From Epiperipatus broadwayi (taxonomy: Eukaryota; Animalia; Onychophora), in assembly GCA_028023455.1 (NCBI GenBank), contig JAQFVV010000001.1, forward strand, positions 17,112,001 through 17,176,000: 64,000 nucleotides of DNA, read 5' to 3'. How positions within the stretch are numbered: position 1 is the first letter of the stretch; every line of letters begins with the position of its first letter. The translations under genes were made by a program, and so were the position numbers. The notes beneath the pieces are model-generated. The model was not told where the DNA came from, ran no database searches, and was given only the letters and a program-made list of their open reading frames with translations. Of this stretch, positions 463 to 37,100 are shown piece by piece.

Positions 463-1140
463 TGAGTTCATTGAGTCAAAATATCATAGTAGAATTTGAC
501 ATCAGTAATGCATTAGAGTAGCCATTACATGTAATGCAGCTAAAGAATTGTTTATGCTGAATGATATTGAAGATCATAGATTAAGAAAAATTCACACTTA
601 TATGTTTCACTGGCAAAAAAGCAATACAGGCTATAAGTAGATTATTTCAGATACCCATAACAGAGAATGTAAAATATGAGGAACTAAAAAAGAAATTATG
701 CAATCATTTTAGTTCTTATCCAATCCAGCACCTAACTTGCTTAACCTTATGAAATAGGAAACAGTTTAATGGGGAAAAAATTAAAGAGTACAACTCAACT
801 CTGAGGGAGTTAGCAAAAGATGGTTGTTATGCATTTTCTCAAACAACAACTACTTACAGAACCAGATATCACATATAAAATGGTCATTAAGAAAGGCATA
901 GCATATAAATTAATTCTGGAACAAACTCAGGTTTTTAGAACTAAAACTAAGAAAAACACTAAAATGGGGGTGCTCAAAACAGAAAAGGAGAGTATCATAC
1001 CATGGAAAACTGATCATAGTAAGAATACTAAAGAGATATGTTTTTGCTGTGAAAAGAGGGGTCACAAATACAGGTAGCTCAAAGAAACATGTTGTAATTG
1101 TGGTAAAAATGGTCATTTAGTGCGTATGTGTAACCAAAAA
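463..1140 (+). pseudogene. gag: gag remnant with two CCHC zinc knuckles
   Basis: CFCCEKRGHK (broken knuckle) and intact CCNCGKNGHLVRMC (CX2CX4HX4C) at 1090-1131. Confidence 0.85.
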
Positions 1141-1170
1141 GGTAATATTTAAAGCAGAAATAAATTACCA

Positions 1171-3850
1171 ATGCAAGCAAATAGGGTAGGTACTCACATG
1201 GTTAAAAACATGGATGTCCAAGAATTAAATCAGTTTATGATTGAGTTAGTATTTTGTGGAAAAGAGATATCAATGAAAATTGGTAGAGGGTCAGGTATTT
1301 CCCTGATGCCACTAACAGACTGGATGTTATTGTTATCAGCTGACATGAAAAATAAATTAGAGAAAAGTAATATTAGAGCATGCGATGCAAATGGAAACAT
1401 TCTAAAATTATTAGGCCATGTGACAGTAACCACCAATCACTATGGTAAAAAAGGAATCTACCCTATATATAGTAAAAGGAAAAATCAGCCTCATCCTCAG
1501 GAGGGAGTGGTTCCATGAGTTAGGAATCCAAATTAATATTACAAAAAAATCTCTCTTGAATAGGAAATAGCATACAAATATCTTGATTTCTTTAATGAAG
1601 AATTGGGATTAATTACAATGAGCCAAGGTTGATATAGAGTTACTGGAAAATGCACATCTGGTTATGTATAAACCTCATAAAATCCCATTCGCTCAAAAAG
1701 AGAAAATGGCAAAAAACTAAATTCTTTAGTCACTAAGGGCATATTAATACCAATTGAAACATTAGAATGAGCCATGCCTTTAGTAATAATAATTAAGCCA
1801 AATGGCAAAATTAGATTATGTGGCAACTACAAAGTAATGGTAAAAAAATATCTGGAGCATCCTCTATTCCAAATGTGAGGGAAGTATTAGCCATTCTCCA
1901 AATGCTTCACATTTTGCAAAGTTGGATTTGAACTCTGCATTCCACCAGATACAAGTGACAGATGAATCAGCTGAAAAATTTACCTTGATGACTCCAATGG
2001 GATTATTTAAATATAACTGTTTACCATTTGGCATATCAACAATCCCTATCATTTTTCAAGTAAAAATTAACACATTGCTCCAAGGTCTAGAAGGAGTTAT
2101 CCCCTATTTCAATAATATCCTCATCATGGCATACTCAGAAGAGACACTGCAGAAAATTCTGTTTATGGTTTGTGAAAAATTCAACAGATTGGAATGGAAA
2201 TTAAATGCCTCCAAAAAGTGTATGGTATGCAAAAGAATTAATTTTTTCTCAGTCATATAATTTCTGATAAGAGGAAACAAAAGCACCTTGAAAAGTAAGA
2301 GCAGTGCAAAATGCAAACAAAAACTACAAATGTTAAACAACTACAAGCATATTTAGAGGTGATAATTTTTTTTGAACTTTTTTTAAATAAATAAAGCACA
2401 TATAGCAAAACCATTATATGACTTATTGAGAAAAGATCAAAAGTGGCAATGGTTAGAAATTTATGATGAATCATTCAGCAAAACAAAAGCTCCATTATCA
2501 TTAGAAAAAAATTTTTTGTACACTTTTTAATAGAAATTTAGAAGTGTGTTTAACTACTGAAGCTTTGGAATGGGGTGTACATGCAGTTATCTCTCATCCA
2601 TGTTGTAAGGAGAAACTCCTCATTGCATACACATCATGCAAAACTCTCAAAAGCAGAGAGAAACTACAGTCCAGATTGATAAAGAGGCTTTGGCTATTAT
2701 TTTCACCCTGAAAAAATTTCATCAATACATTTTTGGAAAAAAACATTTCAAATAATAACTGACCATAAACCTCTTCTAGGAATTCTGGGCCATGAGAAAT
2801 TAGCCCCTGATCATTTAAGCCCATGTATGATGCATTGGAAAAATATTTTGTCATATTATGATTACAAATTAGAATATAAGGAGGGCAAAAAGATCTTATA
2901 AGATGATGCATTATCCTATATCCCAGATAAAAAACCAAGCAGTACAGAGACAGACATAAATTATATTGATGTGTTGAAATCAGAAATACTTAATAGTAGA
3001 AAAGTAGCTAGTTGGATAGAAGACAATTAATGTTATCAACTGCTTATGAATTGGATAAAAACAGCTGGCCTGTTTCAAAGCCTTACTATGTCACTCCAGA
3101 GTTCTGGATAAACTAAAACAAATGTAAAGGCTCTGTGTTAATGGGAGATCAGATAGTAATACCAACTAAAGGCAGACAGCAAATTCTAAAACTACTCCAT
3201 GAAGATCATTCTGGAATTTGTGTGGGCTGAAGCATTACCTCACAATTATGTCTGGTGACCAAAAATAACACCAGAGATCAAGCAATACATCAAAAAATGT
3301 ATGGCCTGTTAATCAGAGATGAATATGAAGGGAAAAGGAATATAATCCAGGGTCAATAGCAATGAAAGTCTGGCAGAAAGTGCACATAGACCTTACAGGT
3401 TTAATAAATGGCAAAATACTGCTGATACTTATAGATGCATACTCAAAATGGGCAGAGTGTCACATAGTAAACAATATGAGTGCAAAAGAAATGATAGAAA
3501 CCTTTGTGTCTAACAATGGTGCCAGATTCACCACATAAGAGATGGAAAACTACTTTGTCAACAATGGCATTGAACATATATACACACTCCCATACCATCC
3601 AGAGTCAAATGACCTTACTGAAAAAGCTGTAGTATGCAGCAATTTATAACACCATGCCTCATTAACACTTTACACCATCACCATTTACAGGAAAATTATT
3701 GGCAGAACTGTTAATGGAAAGGAAATTGCAGATTAAATTATTACTTCTACTTCCCAATATGGTCAATGAAGCAAAGAGTGACATACACATGTAACTGGCA
3801 AAAAAAGGGTGAAAATGCATATGTGATAGGTGACAAAGTTTGGGTTTGAG
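1171..3850 (+). pseudogene. pol: pol remnant (protease, RT, RNase H, integrase)
   Basis: Degenerate protease motif IGRGSGISL; RT RLCGNYKV, LDLNSAFHQI, LPFGIS and YFNNILI (decayed YxDD); RNase H EALAIIF and TDHKPLLGI; integrase VHIDLTG, IDAYSKW and PYHPESN. Confidence 0.92.
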
Positions 3851-4199
3851 ATGTGATCAGGAAATGGGTTCAAGGAGTAGTCACAAAATTTATTATGTAA
3901 AAAATAATCACCCAATCATAGGATATGATATACAGGAGATATGTAAATCATGTCCACCATCAAGTCAAAGAAGACTTACACCTATATCAAAAGATGAAAT
4001 GCAAGAAAAACAAGAGATAGTGATTAAAGAGGATTATCCAGAGTTTGAACCCAAAATTAAGAAAGATGAACTTCAACCAACCCTAAAACCAAACATAGTA
4101 ACAACTAGATTACCCAGAACCAGACAACAGATATGAAGGCTGGTTAAATTAAAAAAATACATGTGAACTTAAGCAAATTTTCTGGAGTAAGGAGAGGAG

Positions 4200-4977
4200 T
4201 ATAAAATATTCAATTTATATTTAATAAATTTGGTTATAGTGCTGCAAAATTAATTGATAAAAAAAATATTAATAAGCCAAGTTAAAAATAAAAGCTTTGA
4301 ATAGAGAGAAACAAAATAAATGTATATAGTAATTAATTTTGTAGATCTGAAAAGTTAGATTATAGTAAAAATAAATTCCTTAGATAAACAGGAAATTAGT
4401 AATTAAAGTCAAGAGAATTTTATTGTACAATAACTATTGATTTAAGAGCCGATAACAAAACTCTAAATCTAATAATAGTTAAATTGTTTTACACAGAACT
4501 AATTAAAGTAAAAGTCACAAAAACCTCTTCTCCAAATTACATGGGAAAAATAAATTAATTACTCCAGAACAGAAAGTAAAGAAAAAAGAAGAAAACAAAA
4601 AGGCTAGAAAAGAAAGGACTGGGGGCTCTTGGTGTCTTCCTGTTATTCTGACTCCATGCATAAGTTGCAATGAAGATCATCATCAGTGGACTACATTCCC
4701 AGGATCCAGATTCCTGAAGTTAACCAAGCTGATTTCTCGGCTCCTCTAATTAACCAAGCTGAGGACTTTTAGCAGACTATCCCAGTCATTTTTATGAAAT
4801 GCCCCAAGACACTCACCAAGGGTTTTGTGTTTAAAAGAGATAGATTGTGCAGTGAAGATAAAGCACCTCTTTGCTTAGACTTTTTGGTAAATTCAGTGGC
4901 TCCCTCTAGCCATGAATGTTGACCTTAATTGCAGACTTTCAGCTGATCATTACTATATATATTTACATATAATAACA
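4200..4977 (+). repeat. 3' LTR (boundaries approximate)
   Basis: Follows the PPT and is homologous to 1-180; candidate end AATAACA. Confidence 0.65.
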
Positions 4978-11492: not shown

Positions 11493-14472
11493 ATGATAAA
11501 GATTTTTCCCAATTATACAATTATGACAGACAAAAATAAAGCATGGCCCTTAATCCCAGGAGGCTGTAAAGTCACCAACCAAGGCAGCGGTTGGTGGCCG
11601 AAGGTGGAGGGTGCTAAGAATATCCTGGAGGCGGACCCAGGCTGCCATTTGATGACGACTTTTTATTTAGGTACTTACAACTGCAGATCACTTTCAAGTG
11701 AAGGAAGATTGCAAGAATTAGAAGAAGAACTCTCTTATATTAAATGGGATATTATTGGACTTTGTGAAGTTAGAAGAAAAGGTGAAGAGACAATTGATTT
11801 AAAAAGTGGACATATGCTCTATTATAAAGGCACAAATATTGGAAATACAAGTGGAGTAGGATTCATTATAAATAAAAAGTGGAAGAACAATATTGTGGAG
11901 ATTGATGGTGTATCAGACAGAGTGGCAAGATTAGTTATACAACTTAATAGCAGATATCAAATGCAGATAATTCAGGTTTATGCCCCAACAAGTTCTCACA
12001 GTGATGAAGTAGTGGAAGATTTTTATATGGATGTACAAAAGGCTTTTGATCAGAGTAAACAACATTTTAAAATTGTTATGGGAGATTTTAATGCTAGAAT
12101 TGGTAAACAAATGAAAGATGAAAGTGTTGTAGGTAATTTTGGTTATGGTAATAGAAATGAGAGAGGACATAGACTTGTGGAGTTTGCAGAGAAGGAAAAA
12201 CTTTATATTATGAATTCTTTTTTTGAGAAAAATGTTAGAAGGAAATGGACATGGAAGCATCCAAATGAAGGTACAGCAGAATTGGATTATATTTTGACTA
12301 ACAGGAAATACATATTTCAAGATTGTAATGTTCTTAATAAATTTAACACAGGAAGTGATCATCGATTAGTAAGGGGTAAGATACATGTTAATGTAAAACT
12401 AGAGAGACAAAAATTATTAAGAAAAACTATATTTACAGTTGATATTCCTAATCTTCAGAAACATTCTAATGAATTTAAATTAGAACTTACAAATCGGTTT
12501 CAAGTATTAGTAGATTTTGAACATGATTCAGATTTGAATGAAATTAATATGAAAATAACTGATACACTTTTAAAAACTGCAACAAAGATAGCTGGTAGAA
12601 AAAAGCAGCAATTGACTAATAAAATGTCTACTGAGACTAGAGAACTTATGAAGAAAAGAAGGAATATGAAGATATGCAAGAATGATGCATTAAAAAGAAT
12701 TGAATATCTCGAATTTTGTAAAATGGTGCGGAAAAGAGTTGAAAATGATATAAGAAAGTATAACTGTGAACTAGCAAGAAAATCTGTAGAAGAAAATAAA
12801 AGTCTTAAGAATGTAAAACAACATTTTGGTATTGGTAGGAAATTTATATCTGCAATAAGGAAAAAAGATGGAATTATTACTAAAAAGAGGGATGACATTA
12901 TGAAATTGGTAGAAGATTTTTATCAAGAATTATATAGTAATAAAGAACAAGTACCTCCTATATCTATTACATCTTCCGAATTGCCCAGAATTTTAAATGA
13001 AGAAGTGAGAAATGCAATTAAATGTATGAAAAAAGGAAAGGCTCCAGGTAATGATGGAATTATAATTGATATATTAAAAGAAGCAGGTGAAGAAACAGAA
13101 AAAATATTAGCAAAGTTATATACCAAATGTCTAAATGATAAAGATGTACCGGATGATTGGAAGAATGCAGTAATAATATTAATATTTAAAAAAGGTGATA
13201 AAGAAGATATTAGAAATTACAGACCTATCAGCCTTTTATCAGTTTTATATAAAATTTTTACCAAGATAATTACAACTCGTCTACAGAGAACATTGGATTT
13301 TCACCAACCAAGAGAACAAGCTGGATTTAAAAGTGGTTTTAGTACAGTAGATCATATTCAAGTATTGAGAGAAGTTATAGAAAGTACAAATGAATATGAG
13401 TTGTCATTATGTTTTGGATTTGTAGATTATGAAAAGGCATTTGATTCTATAAACATTTCTTCAGTGATTAAAGCATTGGATCATCAAGGTATAGATCCAG
13501 GATATTGTCATATTTTAAAGAATATTTATAAAAATGCAACAGCAACAATTAGATTACATAATGATACTGGGAAAGTCAACATTGAGAAAGGTGTAAGACA
13601 AGGTGACTCCATATCTCCAAAACTTTTTACAGAAGTGCTGCAAGAAGTATTTTGTGGATTAAAATGGGAAACTAAAGGAGTGAAAGTAAATGGAGATTAT
13701 TTAAGTCATTTAGATTTCGCAGATGATGTAGTTGTTTTTGCAAATAATGCTTCCGAGCTGCAGGAAATGTTGCAGGAGTTATCAGATGAAAGTAGGACTA
13801 AAGATAAATGTTAAAAAGACTAAAGTAATGTTTAATCGATTTGCTCCAAATATGAAAATAAAGATTGATTATGATGAATTAGAACAAGTTAAGAGTTACA
13901 AATACCTTGGTCAGATTATTAATACAGATGGAAACATAATAGAGGAAATTAATCATAGAATTAAACTTGGTTGGGGTGCTTTTGGTAGAAATAACTTGAT
14001 ATTAAAAGGAAATATGCCTATGTGTTTGAAAAGAAAGGTTTTTAACAAATGTGTTTTACCAGTTCTTACTTATGGATCTGAGACTTGGACACTTAATAGA
14101 AGATCAATACAGAGACTTCAGACCACTCAAAGAAGTATGGAGAGATGTATGTTGGGAGTAACAAGAAGAGATCGAAAATGCAATGTATGGGTAAGAGAAC
14201 AAACAGGTGTTACTGACCTCATTGAAAAAATTAAAAGATTGAAGTGGAGTTGGGCTGGACATATTGCTAGAAGAGATGATAATAGATGGACAATTGAAAT
14301 TTTAAACTGGATTCCAAGAGATTGTAAAAGACCCAGAAGGAGACCACATGTAAGATGGATGGATGAAATAAGAAAATGTGTAGGGGTGATGTGGAGAAGA
14401 GAAGCTAAAGATCAGAGAAGATGGATTAAACTTGGAGAGACCTTCATCCTGCAGTGGATTGATAATGGTTGA
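11493..14472 (+). pseudogene. RTE ORF (AP endonuclease plus reverse transcriptase), split into ORFs 11493-13814 and 13732-14472 by an 8-bp deletion
   Basis: APE motifs [21 protein letters not shown] and GSDH; RT motifs [28 protein letters not shown] and FADD; RTE C-terminus LKWSWAGHIARR...LQW. Confidence 0.95.
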
Positions 14473-20089: not shown

Positions 20090-21481
20090 TCTTCATTGAA
20101 AAGCTGTTGATGGAATGCTCAAAGCTCTTGTTGATACCAATCTTATTGTCATACCTATGTTGATTTTAATTCACTGACCCTTCATGTATAGAATGTTAAT
20201 ATGTCCATTTAAATACACAGAAGAGGGATGGGCAGAATACAAGCTGAATATGTAATATTTAAGTACAAATATATTGTCTATACTAAACTTAATATAATTA
20301 GAAAGAATTTGAACTCAGAATTTGAAAATCCTTACAGCTATCCACTCCATCTTGTATAACTGATATACATGATCACATACATGTAATAAAGATAAATGAT
20401 CTCCAATATACATATCTTTTTCACATGTATGTGGTCATGTGTATTGGTTTTATAAGATGAGGAGATAGATGTAGGGAGGTTGAAAGTCTGAGTTCAAATC
20501 CTTCTTAATTACATTAAGTTCAGTATAGATAATATATTTGTATTTAAATATTATTTATTCAGTTTGTATTCTGCTCATCCTTCTATGTATTTAAATAGAT
20601 ATATTAAGGTGCTATATGTGAGAGATCAGAGTGACTTTAAGTCAATGTGGATATGACAATAAGATTGGCATCAATAAGGGCCTTGAGCATTATACATCAT
20701 CAGATTTTTAATGATATGAATGTCTGAAGAGTTGGAGAGTGGAGAAGATATGATGATTTTCTATCTTAATATAAACTGAGCACTGATTATAGATATATGA
20801 GATGATGATCTGCACAAACTGATAAGAGCTGGTTCACCATGAAATGCATATATTGTTGATCAGTTTTTTATGTGGTCATGTGTATGGGTTATATAAGAGG
20901 AAGCGAATAGCTGTAGGGAGCTTGAAAGTCTGAGTTCAAATTCCTTTTAGTTATATTAAGTTCAGTATAGACAATACACTTGTATTTAAATATTATATAT
21001 TCAGCCTATAGTCTTGCCCATACCTCTTCTATGAATTTAAATGGACATATTAAGGTTCTATACATGAGAGGTCAGAGTGACTTAAAGTCAACATGAGTAT
21101 AAAAATAAGATTGGCATCAACAAAAGTTTTGAGTTTTCGATCATCAGGTTTTTAATGATGTAGATGTCTGAAGAGTTGTAGGATGGAGAAAAGTGAATCC
21201 TATCCATTAAAGCTTGAAGATATGCTATCTTAATATAATCTGGGAATTCATTATATAAATGTGTGAGAGATGATGATCTGGACTAACTGATAAATGCTGG
21301 TTCTGCATGAAATACATATATTGGAGATCATATATCTTTTTTTATGTGTATATGGTCATGCATATTAGTTGTATAAGATGTAGTGGATAGCTGTAGGAAA
21401 CTTGAAAGTCTGAGTTCAAATCCCTTGTAATTACATTAAATTCACTATAGGCAATATACTTGTATTTAAATATTATATATA
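20090..21481 (+). repeat. Array of ~440-480-bp hammerhead-bearing units: one inverted partial unit followed by ~2.4 tandem units
   Basis: TTGAAAGTCTGAGTTCAAAT recurs at ~20480, 20922 and 21402; 20090-20410 is the reverse complement of ~20410-20720; hammerhead-like cores at 20819-20855 and 21283-21324. Confidence 0.88.
21283..21324 (+). ncRNA. Hammerhead motif with mutated core (G8 to A)
   Basis: CTAA-CTGATAA-ATGC/TGGTTCT/GCAT-GAAA-TACATATA-TTGG; matches the 33946-33989 copy, which has intact CTGATGA. Confidence 0.65.
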
Positions 21482-27930: not shown

Positions 27931-30598
27931 TATTGTTATTAACAAATTATTTACATTAATATTTAATAAAAATGATGCAACAATGAAGTAAAAGGGCAAT
28001 TACAAACATGTTTGAGTTGAACAGTGAGCTTTTTTAAAGGATAATAGAAAAAAATCTATTATTTATGGAAGAACCTACAATTTCCTATGTGAAATAATTT
28101 AAGTTAAAGTTCGAAAACAAGTGTTGATCAAATTTGAGTGGCAATATTATCAAAGTCATATATAAATATTCTGAAAGTGAGAGTAAATGTAAACAACTCA
28201 ATATAACTAAATAAAGAATTCAAAATTAAAGTCTTTGTAAATAAAGTAGAAGTGTTCAAATTTCTAAAATTATCCTTAATTCCCTGCTATGGATCATAAA
28301 ACCTAGATCTGAAAGTATGCAATAAAATAAGAGACATTGACAATACTCCACTTGAAACAAACTACTAAAGCAAATATAATTAATAGTGAAAACAAACATG
28401 CATTGCTAAGCACATGAAATATATTGGGGAAAGAAGGTTGTCATCCACAGAGCTATGACTTGACAAGATCAGGATGGAATTGGCTCATCATTTTACACTA
28501 GTACTTATAAAAATCACGCTGATTCATAATGAATTCATCTTATAACTCTCCATTTCAAAACCTCAATTCTAAGGCTATTAAAGACAACCGATGTGATGGG
28601 TGTTCTAGAGCACTTATGAGTTCCTATTTATACATAAATGAACCACCATGGATTACTGGGACAAGCCATTAGGACATTTTCTATATAAACTTTAAAGTCA
28701 AGTTAATGTCATCTACATTCTTTATTTATATATATTATAATTTTGTTTTCTTTACTTTAATATAGGGGAAAATGTTTTAATGTTAATGTTGATGAGTAAT
28801 ATAAAAAAGAAATATTTTCATTTATAATGTAAGCTTAACAAAATAAAATTTATGATATATGCTTGATTACACAATAACCTGATCAATGTCAGAAAGAAAA
28901 GGTAAGACGTTACCTAATACATATATAATTTATAATTTAAACCTAATATATATTTTCATTATTTGTTTATTTCAATACTTGTGTTAACTGTTTCTTTTTT
29001 CATATTTTCTTTTCATATCTCGTTAATTATTTTTATGTCATGAATGGTCTTCCTCATTTATAGTACAAACGTCATACATAACAGGAGAATCCTAAACCAT
29101 CAAGATGTCAAATAAGCATATAAAAGATTAGATTAATCAAATAAATGTATGGCAATTTTATATATAATATGAAAATTATTCAGATTGATCGGGATGTCGA
29201 ATGGCTATTCTTTGAAGAATCAGGCTTTGGGATAATGTTAGAACTAAATATGAAAAAAGAATAACAACAAACACCTAAGTGAATATTTCACAATGGTTTT
29301 AAATTTTTCTCTGTTTAAATACTAATCACTCTAAATCTGATTATTAAACTTATTCAAATGTTAAAATATGATTCTTGGTTTATTTTTCTGTAATCAAATT
29401 TTAATTAGTCATATTCTTCCATATATTTATGATCATTACATGTGTTTATACACAATATCATATCCACTCCCATTAGCAAACATATGTTTATTTTACGCGT
29501 AATCATATTATTGGGGATACAAATATAACTTGAATCAGATGACCATGCAAATTCTCCCTGGGTTTAAAATCTGGAAGAGCAGAAGTGAAGTGCAATATGA
29601 ATGAGGTAAATTAAGTATAGAATTAATATGCAGTTAGTTTTTAATTTCTCCTGTCCTAGATATGAATTCAATATGTGCAGGGTATGCATAAGTATGAGCA
29701 ACAAAGACGTACTTATTTATCCATCATGATGAACCCACTAACCAATATGCATACCAAGAAAGGTCTCTTCCATTACAATATATACTAAACACATCATACA
29801 AAACAAAGATAATCCTAATTTTATTTACAACCTTTTCTGAATTACTAAATTTCCATTGTTAGATTAAATGTATAACAATTGGAAAAACCATTAGAATATA
29901 ATTTGATATTCTTAAATTTTATGCATTATAATAAAATGTCTCTAAGTACAATCTATTCAATCAACATTTTCTTTAAAATATTATGAGTATGATATCAATA
30001 TTAAGATATTGAAAGCTGTTTAGCATACTATAATAAAACTTTTATTCTTAAGTTTTTTTTACTCAAAGTTTCTAGCATTTATATCAAATAAAACATTAAA
30101 TAGTAATATTTGTCAATCACATTCTTCAGTAACTTTAGTAAATTAATACTATTACCTAAATATACAGCTTTTAAAGTTTTTCTTATAATAAAACAGTTAT
30201 TTACTACACTATGATATTCAGTTTTAGGAGATTCTACCAATAATGACCACATTAAAGTATTTATTTATTCCAATTATTGTACTGGAGTATTTTCTCATGA
30301 CAAGTTCTAACTAAGGTATGATTTTTGATTTTATGTTCTTTTGAAAATTAAATCAGAACAAATTTTTTATTATAGGTTACTTTAAATTAAATTGGAAATG
30401 GTTAAAGAAAAAAGAAACTTTTATAATATATAACACAACAATTTTCATTATTATTAGAAGGTGGCTAGTAAACATCAATTTCTGACAAACATAAATTCTA
30501 CCTGTATTTTTATATTGGACTATTTCCATCATCTAATATGTGTGTTGAATGTCTTTAGAAAAGTTTAATTTTTAGTTAAATATTCCAAATGCATTCAA

Positions 30599-30748
30599 CT
30601 GTTAGTAATATCACAGCAAACAGGTTAGTATATGCACCAACTGTTAGTAATATCACAGCAAACAAATGTTAATAATATCACAGCAAACAGGTTAGTATAT
30701 GCACTAACTGTTAGTAATATCACAGCAAACAGGTTAGTATATGCACAA
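30599..30748. repeat. 42-bp minisatellite (~3.6 units), mirrored at ~30945-31095
   Basis: Unit CTGTTAGTAATATCACAGCAAACAGGTTAGTATATGCACCAA; the same partial-unit pattern occurs in both arms. Confidence 0.93.
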
Positions 30749-30813
30749 CATTTCAAGAGGTATTTTTTTCCCCTCTTCTTCAGGTGTTGCTGGCCTGACC
30801 AGTGACAGTACTA

Positions 30814-30879
30814 TTGGTTAGAGCGTTACCTTAAATTTCAATAATCAAGAATCTAAGGACCCAGGTTCGAATCCCATGC
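30814..30879 (+). promoter_or_regulatory. tRNA-like internal Pol III promoter remnant forming the palindrome spacer
   Basis: TTGGTTAGAGCG (D-arm/A-box 3' half) at 30814-30825 and a perfect B box GGTTCGAATCC at 30864-30874; no complete cloverleaf. Confidence 0.7.
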
Positions 30880-30906
30880 TAGTACTGTCACTGGTCAGGC
30901 CAGCAA

Positions 30907-30949
30907 CACCTGAAGAAGAGGGGAGAAAAATACCTCTTGAAACGTTGTG
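30907..30949 (+). ncRNA. Minimal type-I hammerhead motif (mirror copy on the minus strand at 30744-30786)
   Basis: CAC-CTGAAGA-A-GAGGGG/AGAAAAATA/CCTCTT-GAAAC-GTT-GTG; palindromic AACGTT helix III; stem I only 3 bp. Confidence 0.72.
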
Positions 30950-33676
30950 CGTATACTAACCTGTTTGCTGTGATATTACTAACAGTTAGTGCATATACTA
31001 ACCTGTTTGCTGTGATATTATTAACATTTGTTTGCTGTGATATTACTAACAGTTGGTGCATATACTAACCTGTTTGCTGTGATATTACTAACAGTTGAAT
31101 GCATTTGGAATATTTAACTAAAAATTAAACTTTTCTAAAGACATTCAACACACATATTAGATGATGGAAATAGTCCAATATAAAAACACAGCTAGAACAC
31201 CATCATCACAAACCTTCAGAAAAACAATAAATTCTACCTATTTATATATTTTTAATTATAGTATAGTAGTTTATGGTTTATTTTTTTTTCATACAATTTA
31301 AAAAGACATTACTGCATTACTATAAATGAGATCAATTATAGTCAACAGTTTCTCATATTGAAGTTGACAAATATAAATAATAATAATAATATATTGAAAA
31401 ATGCACACCGAAACAAAGATAAAGTAAACAAAAATAAAAATCTAATAATAATAAGAAACATTATACAGATCTTTACAAATGAGATTAGAGAAAAGTAAAT
31501 AAATTTCATTAGATAATGGTATCCAATTCTCTATTATTTTATAATGAAACTAAAATTATCCAATAATTTTTTATCAGTAGATACTAGATGACTGTTGATT
31601 AATGTTTATGACTGATATCTAGCTACTAGCAATTTTTGTAAAAGGTCAAACATTCCATTAATTTATACTAAATCTATATCTTTATACAATTAAGGTAATT
31701 TGGAAGAAGGACAAGATAATAATTTATATCTTCTATCAAAAAAAAAAAAAAAAAGAAATCTCTATGAAATGAATCATAAAATTTTAATTATGTTTTCACC
31801 TTGCATTAATGGAAATGTAGGTTTTAAAGTGAAATAGTTCAGAGCAGCAATGTAGACCATTGAAAAACTAAACTTTTTTTGGATTAATTCTTGGTTGAGT
31901 AATGAAAAATGTCAGTTTATTAATAAATAGAACTATTGGGGTGCTCAAATATTGCGTGACTTCTAGTGGAGATTATCATATGATTATTTGTATAATTTGT
32001 AAGCATATTTACATTAGTTTTGTTATAACTATCTTTTTATTTAAAAACATGTGATATTACTTAACATTTAGCTGATAAATAAATAATTATTTGGATCTAG
32101 TAATTAGTTAACATTTTGAAATTTAATACTTATTTCATATATTTAGTATATTACATTTATGACTTATGTTGTCAAAAATAAATTCCTTCATTAATTAATA
32201 AGATATCATACTTGAAAGATTTGGACAGAAAGATTCAATAAAAAATATCAAAATGTAATATTTTAAAATAAGTTCGATTAAATAAAAATATAAAATATGA
32301 ATTTTTTTTTAAAAAAAAAAAGATTTTTTTTTGTCTAAATTCACTAAAATGAAATTAAATCAATAAAAAAAGTATAGAATTTACAATTGAAAGTTTTATT
32401 GATAAATTAAAGGCCAGTTTGAGTCGGTTTTATTAAGAATTTAAATTTCCTCTGTAATTTTTTATATATATTATTAAAAAATTAAATTTTATGATAAAAA
32501 TGCTCAGGAAGTCAAAAAGTACTTGGAAGCCATAATATCATCCAGAAAACATACAAATAAGTAGATTACACTTTTTGCTTTTCTTAATCAGAAATTAATC
32601 TAGAAAGCATTCATTACCTTTACAGCTATCTATTGTTATTACTATACTATCAACAGGATTTTTTTATTTATTTATAATAACATTGTCATCAAAAATTTTT
32701 TTGTTCCAATTTTAAATAACAGATATCTTTTTATTTACTTTTTAAGAGATACTTTCAGTATATATTTTTTAAAAAGTATTTTTAGTAGACACATTTAACT
32801 TTTAAATTTCTGTAATTTTACTACTTACTAAAAATGTAAATGAAAATAATAATAATAATCCTGTGATAACTAATTTTAAAACAACAAAAATGGATTTGTG
32901 CACTCATTTGTTTCTGACAAGTGTTTGAGTGAGTATTGTATTACTAATCTGACATATAACAAGGCTTTTTGCATACAAGATCAACTTACCGTTTAATTAA
33001 CAGCTTAAGCTGTAGTCCTTTGCTCTGAGTTACAAGTGGATTATTAAATGGATTAATCAGTTGTAATAGATTTTCCTTTTAGTCATCGTAGCATCTTTAA
33101 AAGTGACATTTTATGCACTATTTTTTTTCTGTTCAGAATAAATAATCAAATTATTTAAAAATTATAAATGCTTCATATTCTATAGTTAATAAAGTAAAGC
33201 CAAACAGTTTTTTTTTTAAAAAAAAAAAATTTAAAATGTTAGAAAATATCCAAAACATTTGAAATAAGTTTTTTTTAAATAAATATAAAATATATTTTAC
33301 TAGAGTTATTTTTTAAATTTATTTAACGTAATTTCCTCCGTATTTAATTAATTTTATCAGGATAGAATTTTCAACAAAAAATGGACCAATATTTTTAAAG
33401 TTTTATAATTTTAAGTTGTTTTTTTTCTCTTATTTTATATCTAGAAAAAAGTGTGAAAACATGCATCATTTTTAATCCAAGAAGTATTTATTTACAGTAC
33501 TTAGCTTCGAAGAGTTAATCCCAATTTATTAACTGATTCACAATTAATATATTTGCCTATATCTAAAGACGAAAATCTCACTATATTATATAATACGATA
33601 TGGATTTTGCTCAAAGCTAGAATAGCTTATAAATGTTAATCATATAATACTATATAATAAGCAATACTTATTAACA

Positions 33677-33773: not shown

Positions 33774-33804
33774 ATTTTATTGACTTTTACTAAATAAGTG
33801 ATTA

Positions 33805-34137
33805 ATATATTGTACAGGCTTAAACCTGCATTTATATATGTATATATGTGGGGTTCGAACTCAGACTTTCACACGACCCACCACTCTCAGTGCCATCTCA
33901 TATTGCTGACCCACCTGATCACACATGTTGAAAAGATAAATAATCACCAATATATGTATTTCATGCTAAAACAGCAATCATCAGTTGGTCTAGATTGCTA
34001 TCCTCATTGCTGGTTTAGCATGAAATACGTATATTGGTGATTATTTATCTTTTCAACATGTGTGTGATCAGGTGGATCAGCAATATGAGATGGTACTGAG
34101 AGTGGTGGATCGTGTGAAAGTCTGAGTTCGAACCCCG
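33805..34137 (-). mobile_element. Fold-back element with hammerhead and tRNA-like promoter (same family as 20.1-21.5 kb)
   Basis: Arms 33850-33978 and 34006-34136; 14-bp direct repeat TAAATAAGTGATTA at 33791-33804 and 34138-34151; B-box-like GAGTTCGAACCC. Confidence 0.88.
33946..33989 (-). ncRNA. Type-I hammerhead motif with intact core
   Basis: ACCAA-CTGATGA-TTGCTG/TTT/TAGCAT-GAAA-TACATAT-A-TTGGT; 5-bp stem I; the opposite arm keeps the palindromic helix III ATACGTAT. Confidence 0.75.
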
Positions 34138-37100
34138 TAAATAAGTGATTATAATTTATATAAAAAGCAAGAAACAAAATGATTCTATATAACATGTAAT
34201 AAGTTATAAAGTTAATGTAATAATTAGGATTATAAATTACTTTAGAGTCAATGTTCATGTAAATGCATCAGAAAAAAATAAAAATGATTTAATAATAATC
34301 ATAAATAAATTTATAATGAAATAATATAAATATTAAAATATTTTAATATAGAAAATTTTTTAATAAGTCAAAATAATTATGATACATATATAATATGTAT
34401 TTTTAATGGTAATATTAACTTAATATTAAATCTTTTAAATATAAAAATGCGACTAAAAATTTGAAAAAAAAAAAAAACCCCACACATACACACAAACAAA
34501 ACGAAACGTAAAATAAACAGTTAAAAAATATAAAATGCTAAATGGTGTTATTATTGCAGTTGACAATATCTTATGATAATTTTATTAAGGTATGCCATTT
34601 GTTTACCATTTGATGTACATGGTAACAATAACTTCTTTAATTTTATTTATTTAATTTTTTTTTATTTTAAAAAATAATCATTTGAATTTTTGTGTAAGAT
34701 TTCCTATCTTATTTGAATGGAAATAAAATTTATAAGCCAGTTTGACTACATAGATAAATTCTCACGAAGGTTTATACCTACACATACATGCTATATGTCT
34801 ATTCTAATTTTAATGTGATTGTTTTTTTCCCCATATAAATTGCTGTATACCCTCTTTTCTATGAATTTTCTAATTTGCTTTATATTTAATGGCCTATGAT
34901 AATTATTGGAAAGCTTGGTATTTTTATATAATATCTCATCTGGTATTTATAATATTTTTGGCTACTGCTATGGCTATCTTTTCTTTTTTTATATTCTAAG
35001 GCCAAATTTATATAATAAAGTTCAATATTAGGATCTTAATTTTGATATTGTTCTTTATAAATTATAATTCTACATCAAAATATAAATATAATATATTTAT
35101 TTATATGCATACTTATTATATGCATATTCCTCCTCGAAAAATCAATGTAGGAAAAAATAAACAGAGGACTTATGTTTCTATTGTTTTCTAATATGTCTTA
35201 GTAATGATAAATCTAATGCTGAGTCAAAAAAAAAAAAGAAACAGTTGTATTACATATGTTGATAGTTTGGCAATATATATTGATAGCTATGATAAAATTA
35301 ACAGAAAAATAAGTGAAATAAATAAAATTTATGATAAGTTTGACATGAAAATAAATACATACTAAAGAAATTATAATAGAAAATAGAATAAAAATTTGTG
35401 AGAGAAAATTTTAGAATACTTTCAAGTTAATTAATTAATGAGAAAATTAGAATATTTAAATCAAAATTGTAATGTCAAAACAGGCTTTTAATAAGACAGG
35501 CAACTTTTTTTGTGCTTTTTTGAATTTAAAATATAAAATAAATTATCTCAAGAATTTTGATAAGGATGTTGCTTTATACAGAGCAAACTTTTTCTTTTTT
35601 TTAAAAAAAAGATTGAAAACTCTAGAAATCTGAATTTATAAGAAAATTTAAAAATTAAATTAGAATAATATGGTTGAAACTGTATAGATTTTGAAAAATT
35701 AGTAGCAAAAAAAATGATTGCAGAAATTAGAAACAAAGCTGAATTGGACATATAATAAGAATAAGCTAAAGAGTACAAAGATGGATAAAATAGATGTCAA
35801 TGAAAATGAAGACATTGAGAAGATAATCGTGAAAAAATGTCCATTCTAAGATTTTAAAGAGTAGAGCAAACTTTAAAGTATTTCAAAAAAGTCTTGTTGA
35901 TTACATAATCTAATGTTTGTGAAAATCTAGTGATGATGATAACTTTTCTGCTATAAATATAAATTATCTTACTATATTAATATATATATCTGCACAAATA
36001 AAAAAAAAGTGTTTATTTAAAACCATGTTTCAAAGTATCATACGTTTACAGCAGAGCATAACAACAAAACATTCCTCTGTAGTTTAGTCATTGGCTAAGA
36101 AAAGGTTTTTATAATGCAAAGATTATTCTATATTTTATAAAAAACAAACCCAATTTTAGTCTATGTATAAACACTTAAAATAAAGATTGTACAAAAAAAA
36201 AACAATTCTTAAGTGCCTAAACATATTAATTATGTCAGAATTAATTTTATGAATAGAAAATTCTTGTTTATGTATTACGCATATACTGTACAGAACTTTT
36301 GCATACATATGTGAATATTTTTGATAAAATGAGATATTTGTTTTTCCTCTTCTGCTTTATTATCTTGATGAGTGCACTTTCCAAACACTATAATCATATA
36401 TGTATAAGACATGCAAAAGAATACTTTTTGAATTAAAAGGTAATTTTTAAAAAATAGAGTTTAAATCTGATACCAGAAAATCCTTGGAAATTTTTCATAC
36501 TATAGAAATGCTTAGACTTATTATTTAAGTAGCTAGTTCATAGAAATCTGGATAGCAGCCAATGTTGATCAATAAGTGAATATCTACATATATATTCAGG
36601 TAGGGGTAAAGGTTCCAAGTTAAACTGGGTTAGACAAGGGAATGATAATTTTCTGGCCAGAACTGATCTGAAACATTGCAAATGGTGCAACCGCACTAAG
36701 TCTCCATGCATGCATGGTCTATGCTTTCTGTAAAAATTAAAACAAATGTTTTATTACTTGCTAAATGTAATTATATTTCCTTTTTTTTGCCAAAAATTCT
36801 GTAATTTGAAAATCATATTGAGTCAAAGTAATACAATTGTGAAAACACTGGTTGTGCAATGATATAGTTTTCTCAGATAATACATTGTGTATGCTTAAAT
36901 ATTTTATAATTTTCTGGTCATGTTAATTTGAAACAACATAGATCAAAAAGATTCTTTTCATTAGCAATTTTATCTATTGAATCAGAATTCACACACACAA
37001 AAAAATAAATTATGGCAGTATTATTAATGGATTCACAATAAAACATTCAAGGAAATAAAATATAATTTTTTGTATTATATGTATTTTATTTGTGTTCTCA

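Follow-up and report, generated by a model that had tools for sequence, protein, structure and literature searches.

The locus discussed here lies in a 64,000-nt stretch of DNA from Epiperipatus broadwayi, referred to as the window. It holds a palindrome of ~750 bp, in which most of one short element occurs twice in opposite orientations between a single pair of direct repeats. The question raised by this arrangement is how two head-to-head copies could have reached the same target site, and by the action of which enzyme. We consider it probable that one retrotransposition event gave rise to both copies of a tRNA-headed short element, the most likely enzyme being the RT/GIY-YIG endonuclease of a Penelope-like element (PLE).

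Two copies within one target-site duplication

The features of the locus are given below with their coordinates in the window.

30496-30813 and 30880-31197: inverted repeat, arms of 318 nt, 98% complementary, 66-nt spacer
30491-30503, no strand: left copy of the target-site duplication (TSD), ATAAATTCTACCT, 13/13 identical to 31227-31239
30504-30813, minus strand: inverted partial copy, equivalent to 30880-31189, without the tRNA-like head and the 37-nt tail
30744-30786, minus strand: mirror hammerhead-like motif, with U at 15.2 (AUGU for ACGU) and A for G in loop 2
30814-31226, plus strand: forward copy, with a 5'-truncated tRNA-like head, hammerhead-like motif, tandem repeats, 3' stem-loop and tail
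30814-30879, plus strand: palindrome spacer, 66 nt, what is left of the tRNA-like head, D-loop (TTGGTTAGAGCG) to T-arm
30864-30874, plus strand: Pol III B box, perfect, GGTTCGAATCC
30907-30949, plus strand: Penelope-type minimal hammerhead-like motif, a post hoc descriptor match
30947-31097, plus strand: internal tandem repeats of 25-nt and 17-nt modules, mirrored at 30596-30746
31160-31207, plus strand: 3' stem-loop with the 8-bp stem GAUGAUGG/CCAUCAUC, enclosing the inner terminus 31189/31190
31190-31226, plus strand: AC-rich tail of 37 nt, in the forward copy only, arm identity stopping at 31189
31227-31239, no strand: right copy of the TSD, ATAAATTCTACCT, 13/13 identical to 30491-30503

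The stretch truly common to both arms comprises 30504-30813 and 30880-31189, with 4 mismatches in 310 nt (98.7% identity). These mismatches, at positions 30925/30768, 30943/30750, 30951/30742 and 31187/30506 (right/left arm), are transitions in all four cases. Two of the four are at CpG, GAAACG versus GAAATG among them, in agreement with a first-pass annotation of this DNA, which had described near-identical arms with CpG/TpG pairs. Contigs of the family differ from this copy by 5-10%, and the much closer agreement of the two arms over 310 nt indicates that they derive from one source. The flanking direct repeat of 13 bp noted in the same annotation is perfect (13/13) and encloses both arms. 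Because this single perfect TSD surrounds the forward copy together with the inverted partial copy upstream of it, the earlier proposal of a single integration event is upheld. The insertion target is AT-rich unique DNA. The 42-bp minisatellite reported within the arms is a genuine tandem repeat but not a simple 42-mer, being built of 25-nt and 17-nt modules with TRF periods of 25, 42 and 67. The suggestion that a read-through transcript would form a hairpin of >300 bp is borne out by the predicted fold, with an MFE of -555 kcal/mol (z -55).

The palindrome is confirmed to be real. An assembly or sequencing artefact in the form of a fold-back chimera has in its favor that no k-mer contig crosses the palindrome center, as high-copy k-mers break all contigs inside the element. 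A chimera would, however, have mirrored the flank as well, and here two different unique flanks share the 13-bp TSD. Both flank-element junctions are present in k-mer contigs at single-copy depth: a 496-nt contig (depth 31.7) spans 30032-30527, starting in the unique left flank and reaching 24 nt into the arm, and a 1102-nt contig (depth 32.4) covers 31205-31700 with zero differences. It should be mentioned that these contigs reach only 22-24 nt into the element, which is below the 31-nt bridging rule. The arms also differ from each other at 4 positions. Since the flanks differ and both junctions stand at single-copy depth, a fold-back read chimera is rejected, and we regard an artefact of any such kind as very improbable. 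Three small runs had zero depth over the insertion flanks, and in the run labeled 'RNA?' the element family was present and the insertion flanks were absent.

The family, its tRNA-like head and its hammerhead-like motif

The element, ~430 nt long and non-coding, belongs to a family of very high copy number that occurs in several related species. Its summed word depth is 0.8-3 million compared to ~32 on the single-copy flanks, a depth that does not equal copy number, and the family is found next to hundreds of distinct flanks. No further copy was found in the 64-kb window with blastn and nhmmer, and two probes recovered no family copies from the metagenome and viral collections. A second, unrelated element in the window, at 33791-34151, has the same footprint as the locus: its arms are inverted, its TSD is 14 bp long, and ~44 nt of extra sequence stand on one side only. 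A search of the window gave no autonomous PLE ORF (RT/GIY-YIG): the ORFs at 800-4200 are part of a decayed Ty3/gypsy-like element, and the region 11493-14472 is an RTE LINE (an RTE element with a 773-aa ORF at 11493-13814).

The first-pass annotation had equated the spacer with a tRNA-like segment carrying a perfect B box. The B box is there: the pattern GGTTCGANTCC has its sole match in the 64 kb at 30864-30874 and none in 100 shuffles. The segment is not whole, with ~15 nt missing 5' of 30814. Other family copies run on 5' of this position with ...GGCTCAG (loose ends in runs X5 and X6), which supplies the missing D-stem and A-box part; in these copies the A box is represented by ...TGGCTCAG before the position equivalent to 30814. 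The ~15 nt absent from the head of the locus copy include most of the A box, and the reading of the 'tRNA-like loop' as a working Pol III unit is abandoned for this copy. ARAGORN reported no tRNA at default settings and a match only at a relaxed threshold of 70-80%, which did not improve when the 15-nt 5' part was restored from other copies. Rfam gave no tRNA match in 30300-31400 at E<=10, nor in the whole 64-kb window at the gathering score. The only match in the Rfam searches was a spurious mir-1784, caused by the palindrome.

The head also bears on whether the unit could be a DNA transposon of the Foldback or MITE type, with subrepeats making up its long terminal inverted repeats. Tandem subrepeats inside long inverted arms are found in Foldback elements, and a direct repeat flanks the unit. 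The termini are nevertheless asymmetric, the right end having 37 nt without a left counterpart, and other copies pass from 30814 into the tRNA 5' part instead of into an inverted arm. Together with the 13-bp TSD and copies that number in the tens of thousands, the tRNA-like head indicates a retroelement, and a DNA transposon of this type has very little to be said for it.

A hammerhead had been placed 35 nt past the B box. This position is correct, with CUGAAGA starting at 30910, but the motif is not of a canonical class: it matches only a relaxed, Penelope-type minimal descriptor, which was written post hoc and has 1 match in the window versus 0 in 200 shuffles. Rfam hammerhead families gave no match in the 1.1 kb of 30300-31400 at E<=10 and none in the 64 kb at the gathering score. 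In the forward motif, helix I (CAC/GUG) is followed by the core CUGAAGA (30910-16), an extra A (30917), helix II (30918-23/30933-38), GAAA (30939-42), CG (30943-44), a U (30945) and the H17 U (30946). The core CUGANGA ... GAAA is thus abutted by a helix II of 6 bp, and the extra A and CG are both present, the mirror copy having UG in place of the latter. A helix I of 4-5 bp is absent from the forward motif, which has 3 bp with mismatches beyond; a helix I of 2 bp has been reported for the D. virilis variant of the minimal hammerhead (Cervera & de la Pena 2014, also the source of the Penelope-type minimal features used here). The conserved G10.1-C11.1 pair is likewise absent, G.U standing in its place (T at 30938), and C occupies this position in about half or more of the family depth. 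The local fold of the forward motif is unexceptional (z -0.67), and the mirror motif fails the strict palindromic 15.2-16.2 test. Taken together, the forward motif fits the published Penelope-type minimal hammerhead weakly. A canonical hammerhead, in which ACG/CGU would form a helix III of 3 bp and GUA the cleavage site, was ruled out, as helix I could not form in that case. Covariation is also unsupported: C/U at 30943 and G/A at 30951 were considered as a compensatory pair, and C with A is the commonest combination in the family depths. Nor is extra constraint on the motif indicated, given 4 variable sites in 43 nt versus ~4-5% elsewhere in the element. Read starts and ends piled up nowhere in the runs, whose form as contigs makes this uninformative about self-cleavage.

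The linkage of B box and hammerhead motif extends beyond this locus, as had been supposed, both being found together in other family copies (four contig records). The motif may be viewed as a feature of the family, presumably inherited from a PLE-type element. Cleavage of the dimer type requires two sense copies of a hammerhead. The 'mirrored hammerheads' of the first-pass annotation do not provide them: whichever strand is transcribed, one copy is in sense and the other in antisense orientation, and the motif would be locked up in the hairpin. By itself the locus is an ordinary repeat insertion and probably inert, in view of the lost A box, the single sense ribozyme motif per strand and the long hairpin that a transcript would form.

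Recurrent termini and the origin of the inverted copy

Where the inverted arm ends on its outer side, 225 and 77 family contigs have loose ends as well (30503/30505, X1 DNA run), as do 9, 10 and 19 further contigs at 30503 in runs X6, X7 and X5, all of these counts, like the depth sums, being taken from k-mer contigs and not from reads of defined loci. The flanks beyond the contig ends at this inner terminus are unrelated and in low agreement. A second class of ends, again with unrelated flanks, is located at 31226/31230. The family thus has two recurrent termini, 37 nt apart, equivalent to 31189 and 31226. The RNA fold of the 3' stem-loop around the inner one is -11.9 kcal/mol (z -4.16). The recurrence of the inner terminus could mean merely that many ordinary single copies lack the tail, and is in itself no proof of top-strand priming.

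Termini of this kind have a precedent in PLEs, which often insert with a 5'-truncated, inverted copy on their 5' side and with a tail of 30-40 bp on one side only (Craig et al. 2021, PMC8557442). When purified, a PLE protein cut both DNA strands and extended them; it initiated reverse transcription at two neighboring internal positions of an AC-rich stem-loop, the stretch between them becoming the tail (Frangieh et al. 2024, PMC11167929). As the inverted 5'-truncated copy and the one-sided tail together make up this footprint, which the second element at 33791-34151 has as well, and as the inner terminus is recurrent, dual priming by a PLE enzyme is favored. A staggered double-strand cut would have led to the 13-bp duplication. 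The bottom-strand 3' end would then prime on the element RNA at the outer start site (31226), from which the forward copy, tail of 37 nt included, would result. From the 3' end of the top strand (...TTCTACCT), copying would begin once more, now at the inner start site (the counterpart of 31189 in the conserved stem-loop), possibly aided by 7/8 pairing with AGCUAGAA just 3' of that site, and would yield the tail-less inverted copy. Both cDNAs may have ended before the RNA 5' end and been joined bluntly at 30813/30814, leaving the remaining tRNA-like head as the 66-nt spacer. The structure, the TSD, the one-sided tail, the recurrent termini and the high copy number are observed directly; we infer the identity of the enzyme, the order of events and the priming on both strands, with the footprint pointing to a PLE as the partner.

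The junction of the inverted arm allows for another origin. As claimed earlier, there is microhomology at its outer end, where TTCTACCTG (30496-30504) agrees with the reverse complement of 31189-31197, TTCTAGCTG, at 8/9 positions; for the 7/8 match, the chance probability in the local base composition is estimated at ~4e-4. The first-pass annotation took this to reflect template switching: a single cDNA made by target-primed reverse transcription would fold back or switch template at its end, and the inverted duplicate would be joined through TTCTACCTG/TTCTAGCTG. Such a process predicts an identical final structure, accounts for the 8/9 microhomology lying precisely where the inverted arm ends on its outer side, and would be expected to give near-identical arms if one templated the other. 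The proposed snap-back point, however, is without complementarity (TTGG at 30814-30817, ATGC at 30876-30879). Nor is there a reason for a copy templated by cDNA to break off 37 nt inside the 3' end, yet the stop is the terminus of hundreds of other family copies. The published PLE footprint and the in vitro data fit better and cover both tail and inversion without an extra step, and microhomology would be expected from annealing of the primer to the RNA at the inner start site. Template switching is for these reasons unlikely, although it is the most credible of the competing accounts.

The partner could also be a LINE, for example the RTE in the window, with L1-style twin priming or 5' inversion. 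Short elements with tRNA heads, SINEs, classically depend on LINEs; the RTE retains a 773-aa ORF, and the 13-bp TSD is compatible. On the other side, the 3' part of the element resembles nothing else in the window, the RTE copy included, and the element ends in neither an A-rich nor a simple-repeat tail. Twin priming inverts one copy, and in this locus the same 310 nt occur in two copies that overlap; the minimal hammerhead, like the 37-nt tail with its optional presence, is a trait of PLEs. LINE mobilization is accordingly considered quite improbable.

Dual priming by a PLE enzyme opens a broader proposal, to which we give somewhat less than an even chance: that the family is a true tRNA-headed, Pol III-type SINE with a PLE, not a LINE, as its partner, and that the locus is an in vivo record of PLE priming on both strands, with the top-strand primer set by short pairing with the RNA beside an internal start site in a conserved stem-loop. 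No partnership between a PLE and a tRNA-headed SINE was found in the literature searched. If true across the family, tRNA-headed hammerhead SINEs would join the non-autonomous passengers of PLEs.

Comparison with known systems

L1 twin priming and 5' inversion share with the proposed mechanism that both cleaved target ends prime within one TSD. They differ in their product, a single copy whose 5' segment is inverted and overlaps barely or not at all, whereas the locus holds the same 310 nt twice.

The schistosome elements Sm-alpha and Sj-alpha (Ferbeyre 1998 and Laha 2000, as cited in PMC2770079) are SINE-like and resemble the present family, by description, as short, tRNA-derived, high-copy elements with a hammerhead motif downstream of a Pol III-type head. 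Their hammerheads are canonical type I and detectable with Rfam, in contrast to the motif of the locus, which is of the minimal PLE type and has no Rfam match.

Metazoan non-LTR retrozymes are likewise non-coding and hammerhead-bearing, and have been proposed as non-autonomous PLE passengers (Cervera & de la Pena 2020; bioRxiv 10.64898/2026.07.22.740005); tRNA heads are unmentioned in the latter preprint. Retrozymes form head-to-tail tandem arrays and circular RNAs, unlike the locus, where one head-to-head pair with a tRNA-like head is present and no other copy lies in the window.

The closest match is with PLEs themselves (Evgen'ev & Arkhipova 2005; PMC8557442; PMC11167929). In both cases, the forward copy is directly preceded at its 5' end by an inverted copy that is 5'-truncated, a tail of 30-40 bp (37 nt here) is found at one end and is bounded by two recurrent termini, these termini lie in and just past an AC-rich stem-loop, a TSD surrounds the whole unit, the target is AT-rich, and a hammerhead motif is present. 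In contrast to PLEs, the locus has neither an RT/GIY-YIG ORF nor a pseudo-LTR tandem, the passenger being a ~430-nt non-coding element with a tRNA-like head. Its target end is 7/8 homologous to the RNA beside the inner start site, whereas no target-RNA homology was reported in the in vitro work on one lizard PLE (Frangieh et al. 2024, PMC11167929). Head-to-head palindromes of this kind are a hazard for assembly and a potential source of long hairpin RNA. As a specimen, the locus is of value in being young, with an intact TSD, arms of 98.7% identity, a one-sided 37-nt tail and measurable microhomology between primer and RNA. The use of two start sites with priming on both strands has so far been shown only in vitro, for that lizard PLE, and under the PLE reading the locus would be an instance from an animal genome with a non-coding passenger. 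Its layout matches the published PLE footprint, which makes it a clear instance of a process already known.

Layout of the palindrome and its support in sequencing runs

The palindrome at 30491–31239 consists of two head-to-head copies of a high-copy short element within one target-site duplication (TSD).

Parts of the palindrome, from left to right
30491–30503: left TSD, ATAAATTCTACCT
30504–30813 (-): inverted partial copy
30814–30879: 66-nt spacer, the 5' part of the forward copy
30814–31226 (+): forward copy, including the spacer
31190–31226: 37-nt tail, past the right arm and without left counterpart
31227–31239: right TSD, ATAAATTCTACCT

A repeat search returned arms of 318 nt at 30496–30813 and 30880–31197, 98% complementary and separated by 66 nt. 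Base by base, the true identity of the arms begins at their inner ends and reaches 30504/31189, interrupted by four mismatches only (30925, 30943, 30951 and 31187 in right-arm coordinates). Each of the four is a transition, and two of them lie at CpG sites, in agreement with the near-identical arms and CpG differences noted in the first-pass annotation. They could be post-insertion mutations, reverse-transcriptase errors, or the trace of two slightly different template RNAs. At 31187 the forward copy has C, while T is found in the inverted arm and in ~97% of the family depth; this C is private to the forward copy and lies 3 nt from the inner terminus described below. Beyond 30504/31189 the arms agree at 8/9 nt only (TTCTACCTG vs TTCTAGCTG), and the left-hand member, TTCTACCTG, overlaps the flanking direct repeat. 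Both the microhomology and the perfect 13-bp direct repeat had been annotated correctly. The annotated 42-bp minisatellite is indeed a tandem repeat, but is built of 25-nt and 17-nt modules (TRF periods 25, 42 and 67) and not of a simple 42-mer.

In k-mer contigs from a same-species DNA run, both flank-element junctions are present at single-copy depth. A 496-nt contig (depth 31.7) covers 30032–30527 and so joins the unique left flank to the inverted arm, and a 1102-nt contig (depth 32.4) covers 31205–31700 with zero differences; the depth of the flank bins is ~30–200. Each junction contig reaches just 22–24 nt into the element, less than the 31 nt of the bridging rule, because every contig breaks on entering the repeat. 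No DNA-run k-mer contig crosses the centre, and for this middle part the structure rests on the assembly. A fold-back chimera of the assembly, considered in the first-pass annotation, is unlikely given the junction contigs; it would also mirror the flanks, whereas the flanks here are two different sequences with a common TSD.

A read-through transcript is predicted by RNA folding to form a hairpin of ~310 bp (-555 kcal/mol, z -55), as anticipated in the annotation (>300 bp), and cruciform extrusion by the DNA is possible in principle. A run labelled RNA contains the family but not the locus flanks. The Rfam match to mir-1784 (30767–30926, -), at 41 bits against a gathering score of 98, is generated solely by the inner palindrome and is not a microRNA gene.

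Two 3' termini and the origin of the palindrome

The asymmetry of the two copies is the decisive observation on the origin of the palindrome. The outer end of the inverted arm, 30504, is equivalent to 31189 of the forward copy. Exactly at this point 225 plus 77 DNA-run contigs stop matching, as do 9, 10 and 19 in three other runs, and contigs past it continue into unrelated AT-rich sequence (agreement 0.45–0.51). A second class of family contig ends lies at 31226/31230. Contig ends pile up at these two places, and the family thus has an inner (31189) and an outer (31226) 3' terminus, both recurrent and separated by 37 nt. The stretch between them is AC-rich, and an 8-bp stem (GAUGAUGG/CCAUCAUC, 31160–31207, z -4.2 by RNA folding) closes a loop that contains the inner terminus.

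Insertions of Penelope-like elements (PLEs) often have an inverted 5'-truncated copy adjoining the 5' end, and a 30–40-bp "tail" at one end only (Craig et al. 2021, PMC8557442). In work with one purified PLE protein, both DNA strands were cut and extended, and reverse transcription began at two adjacent internal sites of an AC-rich stem-loop, the tail being the stretch between (Frangieh et al. 2024, PMC11167929). The layout of the palindrome matches this published signature. We propose that the bottom-strand end was primed at the outer site, which would give the forward copy with its tail, and that the top-strand end, ...TTCTACCT-3', was primed at the inner site, which would give the tail-less inverted copy; the two cDNAs would have been joined at 30813/30814 without microhomology. 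The top-strand end is complementary at 7/8 positions to AGCUAGAA (31190–31197), directly 3' of the inner site, a match with a chance of ~4e-4 at fixed register by our own estimate. Primer-template annealing would predict pairing of this kind at such a position; the published in vitro PLE work, in which no homology was seen, differs in this detail. The main gap of this preferred model is the PLE partner, which is inferred from the footprint; the 64-kb window holds no PLE.

Fold-back or template switching, the mechanism favored in the first-pass annotation, yields the same product as dual priming, and the annotated final structure, a single insertion with an inverted duplicate, is retained. The mechanism itself gives no reason for a stop at a terminus where hundreds of other copies also end, and the bases at the supposed snap-back point are not complementary. 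Twin priming during a LINE-mediated insertion is disfavored, since the element lacks an A-rich or simple-repeat tail as well as 3' similarity to the window's RTE copy (no sequence is common to the LINE at 11493–14472 and the 3' end of the SINE), and since the palindrome is a full duplication and not an inversion. The asymmetric ends exclude a Foldback or MITE DNA transposon, as do family copies that are not palindromic. Dual priming by a PLE is thus kept as the preferred reading.

Several other elements were noted in the window. A second, unrelated fold-back element at 33791–34151 has the same insertion footprint as the palindrome: a perfect 14-bp TSD (TAAATAAGTGATTA), a 27-nt spacer between inverted arms of ~135 nt, and an extension of ~44 nt on one side only, beside the left TSD. 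Its arm termini, GGGGTTCGAAC..., are B-box-like. At 20090–21481, a head-to-tail array of 440–480-nt units (copies 68–85% alike) follows an inverted partial unit (arms 126–146 nt, 81–84% complementary), a Penelope-style tandem-plus-inverted layout older than the palindrome. The RTE-type LINE at 11493–14472 carries a 773-aa open frame, with endonuclease and RT by atlas look-alikes, followed by a 246-aa ORF; its nearest protein-atlas cluster is mostly flatworm. A decayed Ty3/gypsy-like LTR retrotransposon lies at 800–4200 (+).

Features of the LTR retrotransposon
Within 800–4200 (+): Gag-like CCHC knuckle ORF
1922–2257 (+): RVT_1 fragment, E 1e-13
3362–3538 (+): integrase-like ORF fragment

The tRNA-like head, the hammerhead-like motif and the family

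The perfect B box annotated in the spacer, GGTTCGAATCC at 30864–30874, is the sole B-box consensus match in the window, and shuffles gave none. We take TTGGTTAGAGCG at 30814–30825 to be a typical tRNA D-loop with the 3' D-stem. No tRNA was found by ARAGORN at default settings or by Rfam at E<=10. Contigs of other copies do not enter the inverted arm at 30814; their upstream continuation is ...GGCTCAG (loose ends in two other sequencing runs, X6 and X5), and ...GGCAGGATGGCTCAG in one sample. The upstream ...GGCTCAG would supply the 5' D-stem and most of the A box. With 15 nt restored from other copies, ARAGORN reports a tRNA only at a relaxed 70–80% threshold; on account of this match and of the 5' part of the other copies, the family head is read as degenerate and tRNA-derived. 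The spacer is therefore tRNA-like as annotated, but it is not the whole segment, since family copies extend 5' of 30814. The forward copy is 5'-truncated within the head, the B box kept and the A box lost, and it is doubtful that the locus contains a functional Pol III unit.

The annotated hammerhead matches none of five Rfam hammerhead models, but by hand it fits the minimal PLE hammerhead features of Cervera & de la Pena (2014).

Hand reading of the hammerhead-like motif
30907–09 with 30947–49 (+): helix I, CAC/GUG, 3 bp
30910–16 (+): core, CUGAAGA
30917 (+): extra A
30918–23 with 30933–38 (+): helix II, 6 bp, abutting GAAA
30939–42 (+): GAAA
Forward copy (+): palindromic 15.2–16.2 dinucleotide CG, then U16.1, H17 = U

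A regular-expression descriptor, written after the motif was seen, has one match in the window versus none in 200 Markov shuffles, which shows no more than that such a motif does not turn up readily by chance. The 10.1–11.1 pair is G.U in the forward copy; C at 30938, which restores G-C, accounts for roughly half of the family depth or more. Helix I of the forward copy (3 bp) is below the usual 4–5 bp, the local fold does not stand out (z -0.67) and an alternative helix II register competes with it, and in run contigs the motif varies across the family no less than other parts of the element. In the mirror copy, ACGU is replaced by AUGU. Cleavage by published minimal hammerheads is poor and requires a dimer with two sense copies (Cervera & de la Pena 2014); one needs its protein (Frangieh et al. 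2024, PMC11167929). Because a palindrome transcript carries one sense and one antisense copy, the "mirrored hammerheads" of the first-pass annotation do not form a functional pair. The annotated linkage of B box and motif recurs in other copies, with contigs from two species spanning both, and is a family trait.

Summed word depth over 30456–31253 is 0.6–3.1 million in the DNA run versus ~32 for single-copy DNA, in a very AT-rich genome (~26% GC); from such word depths, themselves not copy numbers, we put the family at roughly tens of thousands of copies. The same stretch alone also occurs in runs from other samples and from one further species, and its words are present in runs under ~10 further organism codes. 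No further copies were found in the 64-kb window or in metagenome and viral collections, so all family-level statements rest on k-mer contigs of sequencing runs. Contigs of another sample (organism A) and of organism B, from runs X6 and X5, end at 31223 with the same flank next, TCACGAATAAATATGAGAC..., which suggests that one other family copy occupies orthologous positions in the two species and that the family predates their split.

Comparison with known systems

The palindrome locus belongs to an already known kind of insertion, as its layout is the same as the PLE insertion footprint, published for coding elements. In schistosomes, the SINE-like elements Sm-alpha and Sj-alpha combine a tRNA-derived head with a canonical hammerhead (Ferbeyre 1998 and Laha 2000, cited in PMC2770079). 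Metazoan retrozymes are hammerhead-bearing, proposed non-autonomous PLE passengers (Cervera & de la Pena 2020; bioRxiv 10.64898/2026.07.22.740005), but differ in their tandem arrangement and in having no tRNA head. As a PLE-dependent tRNA-headed SINE, the family may be new and worth a family-level study.
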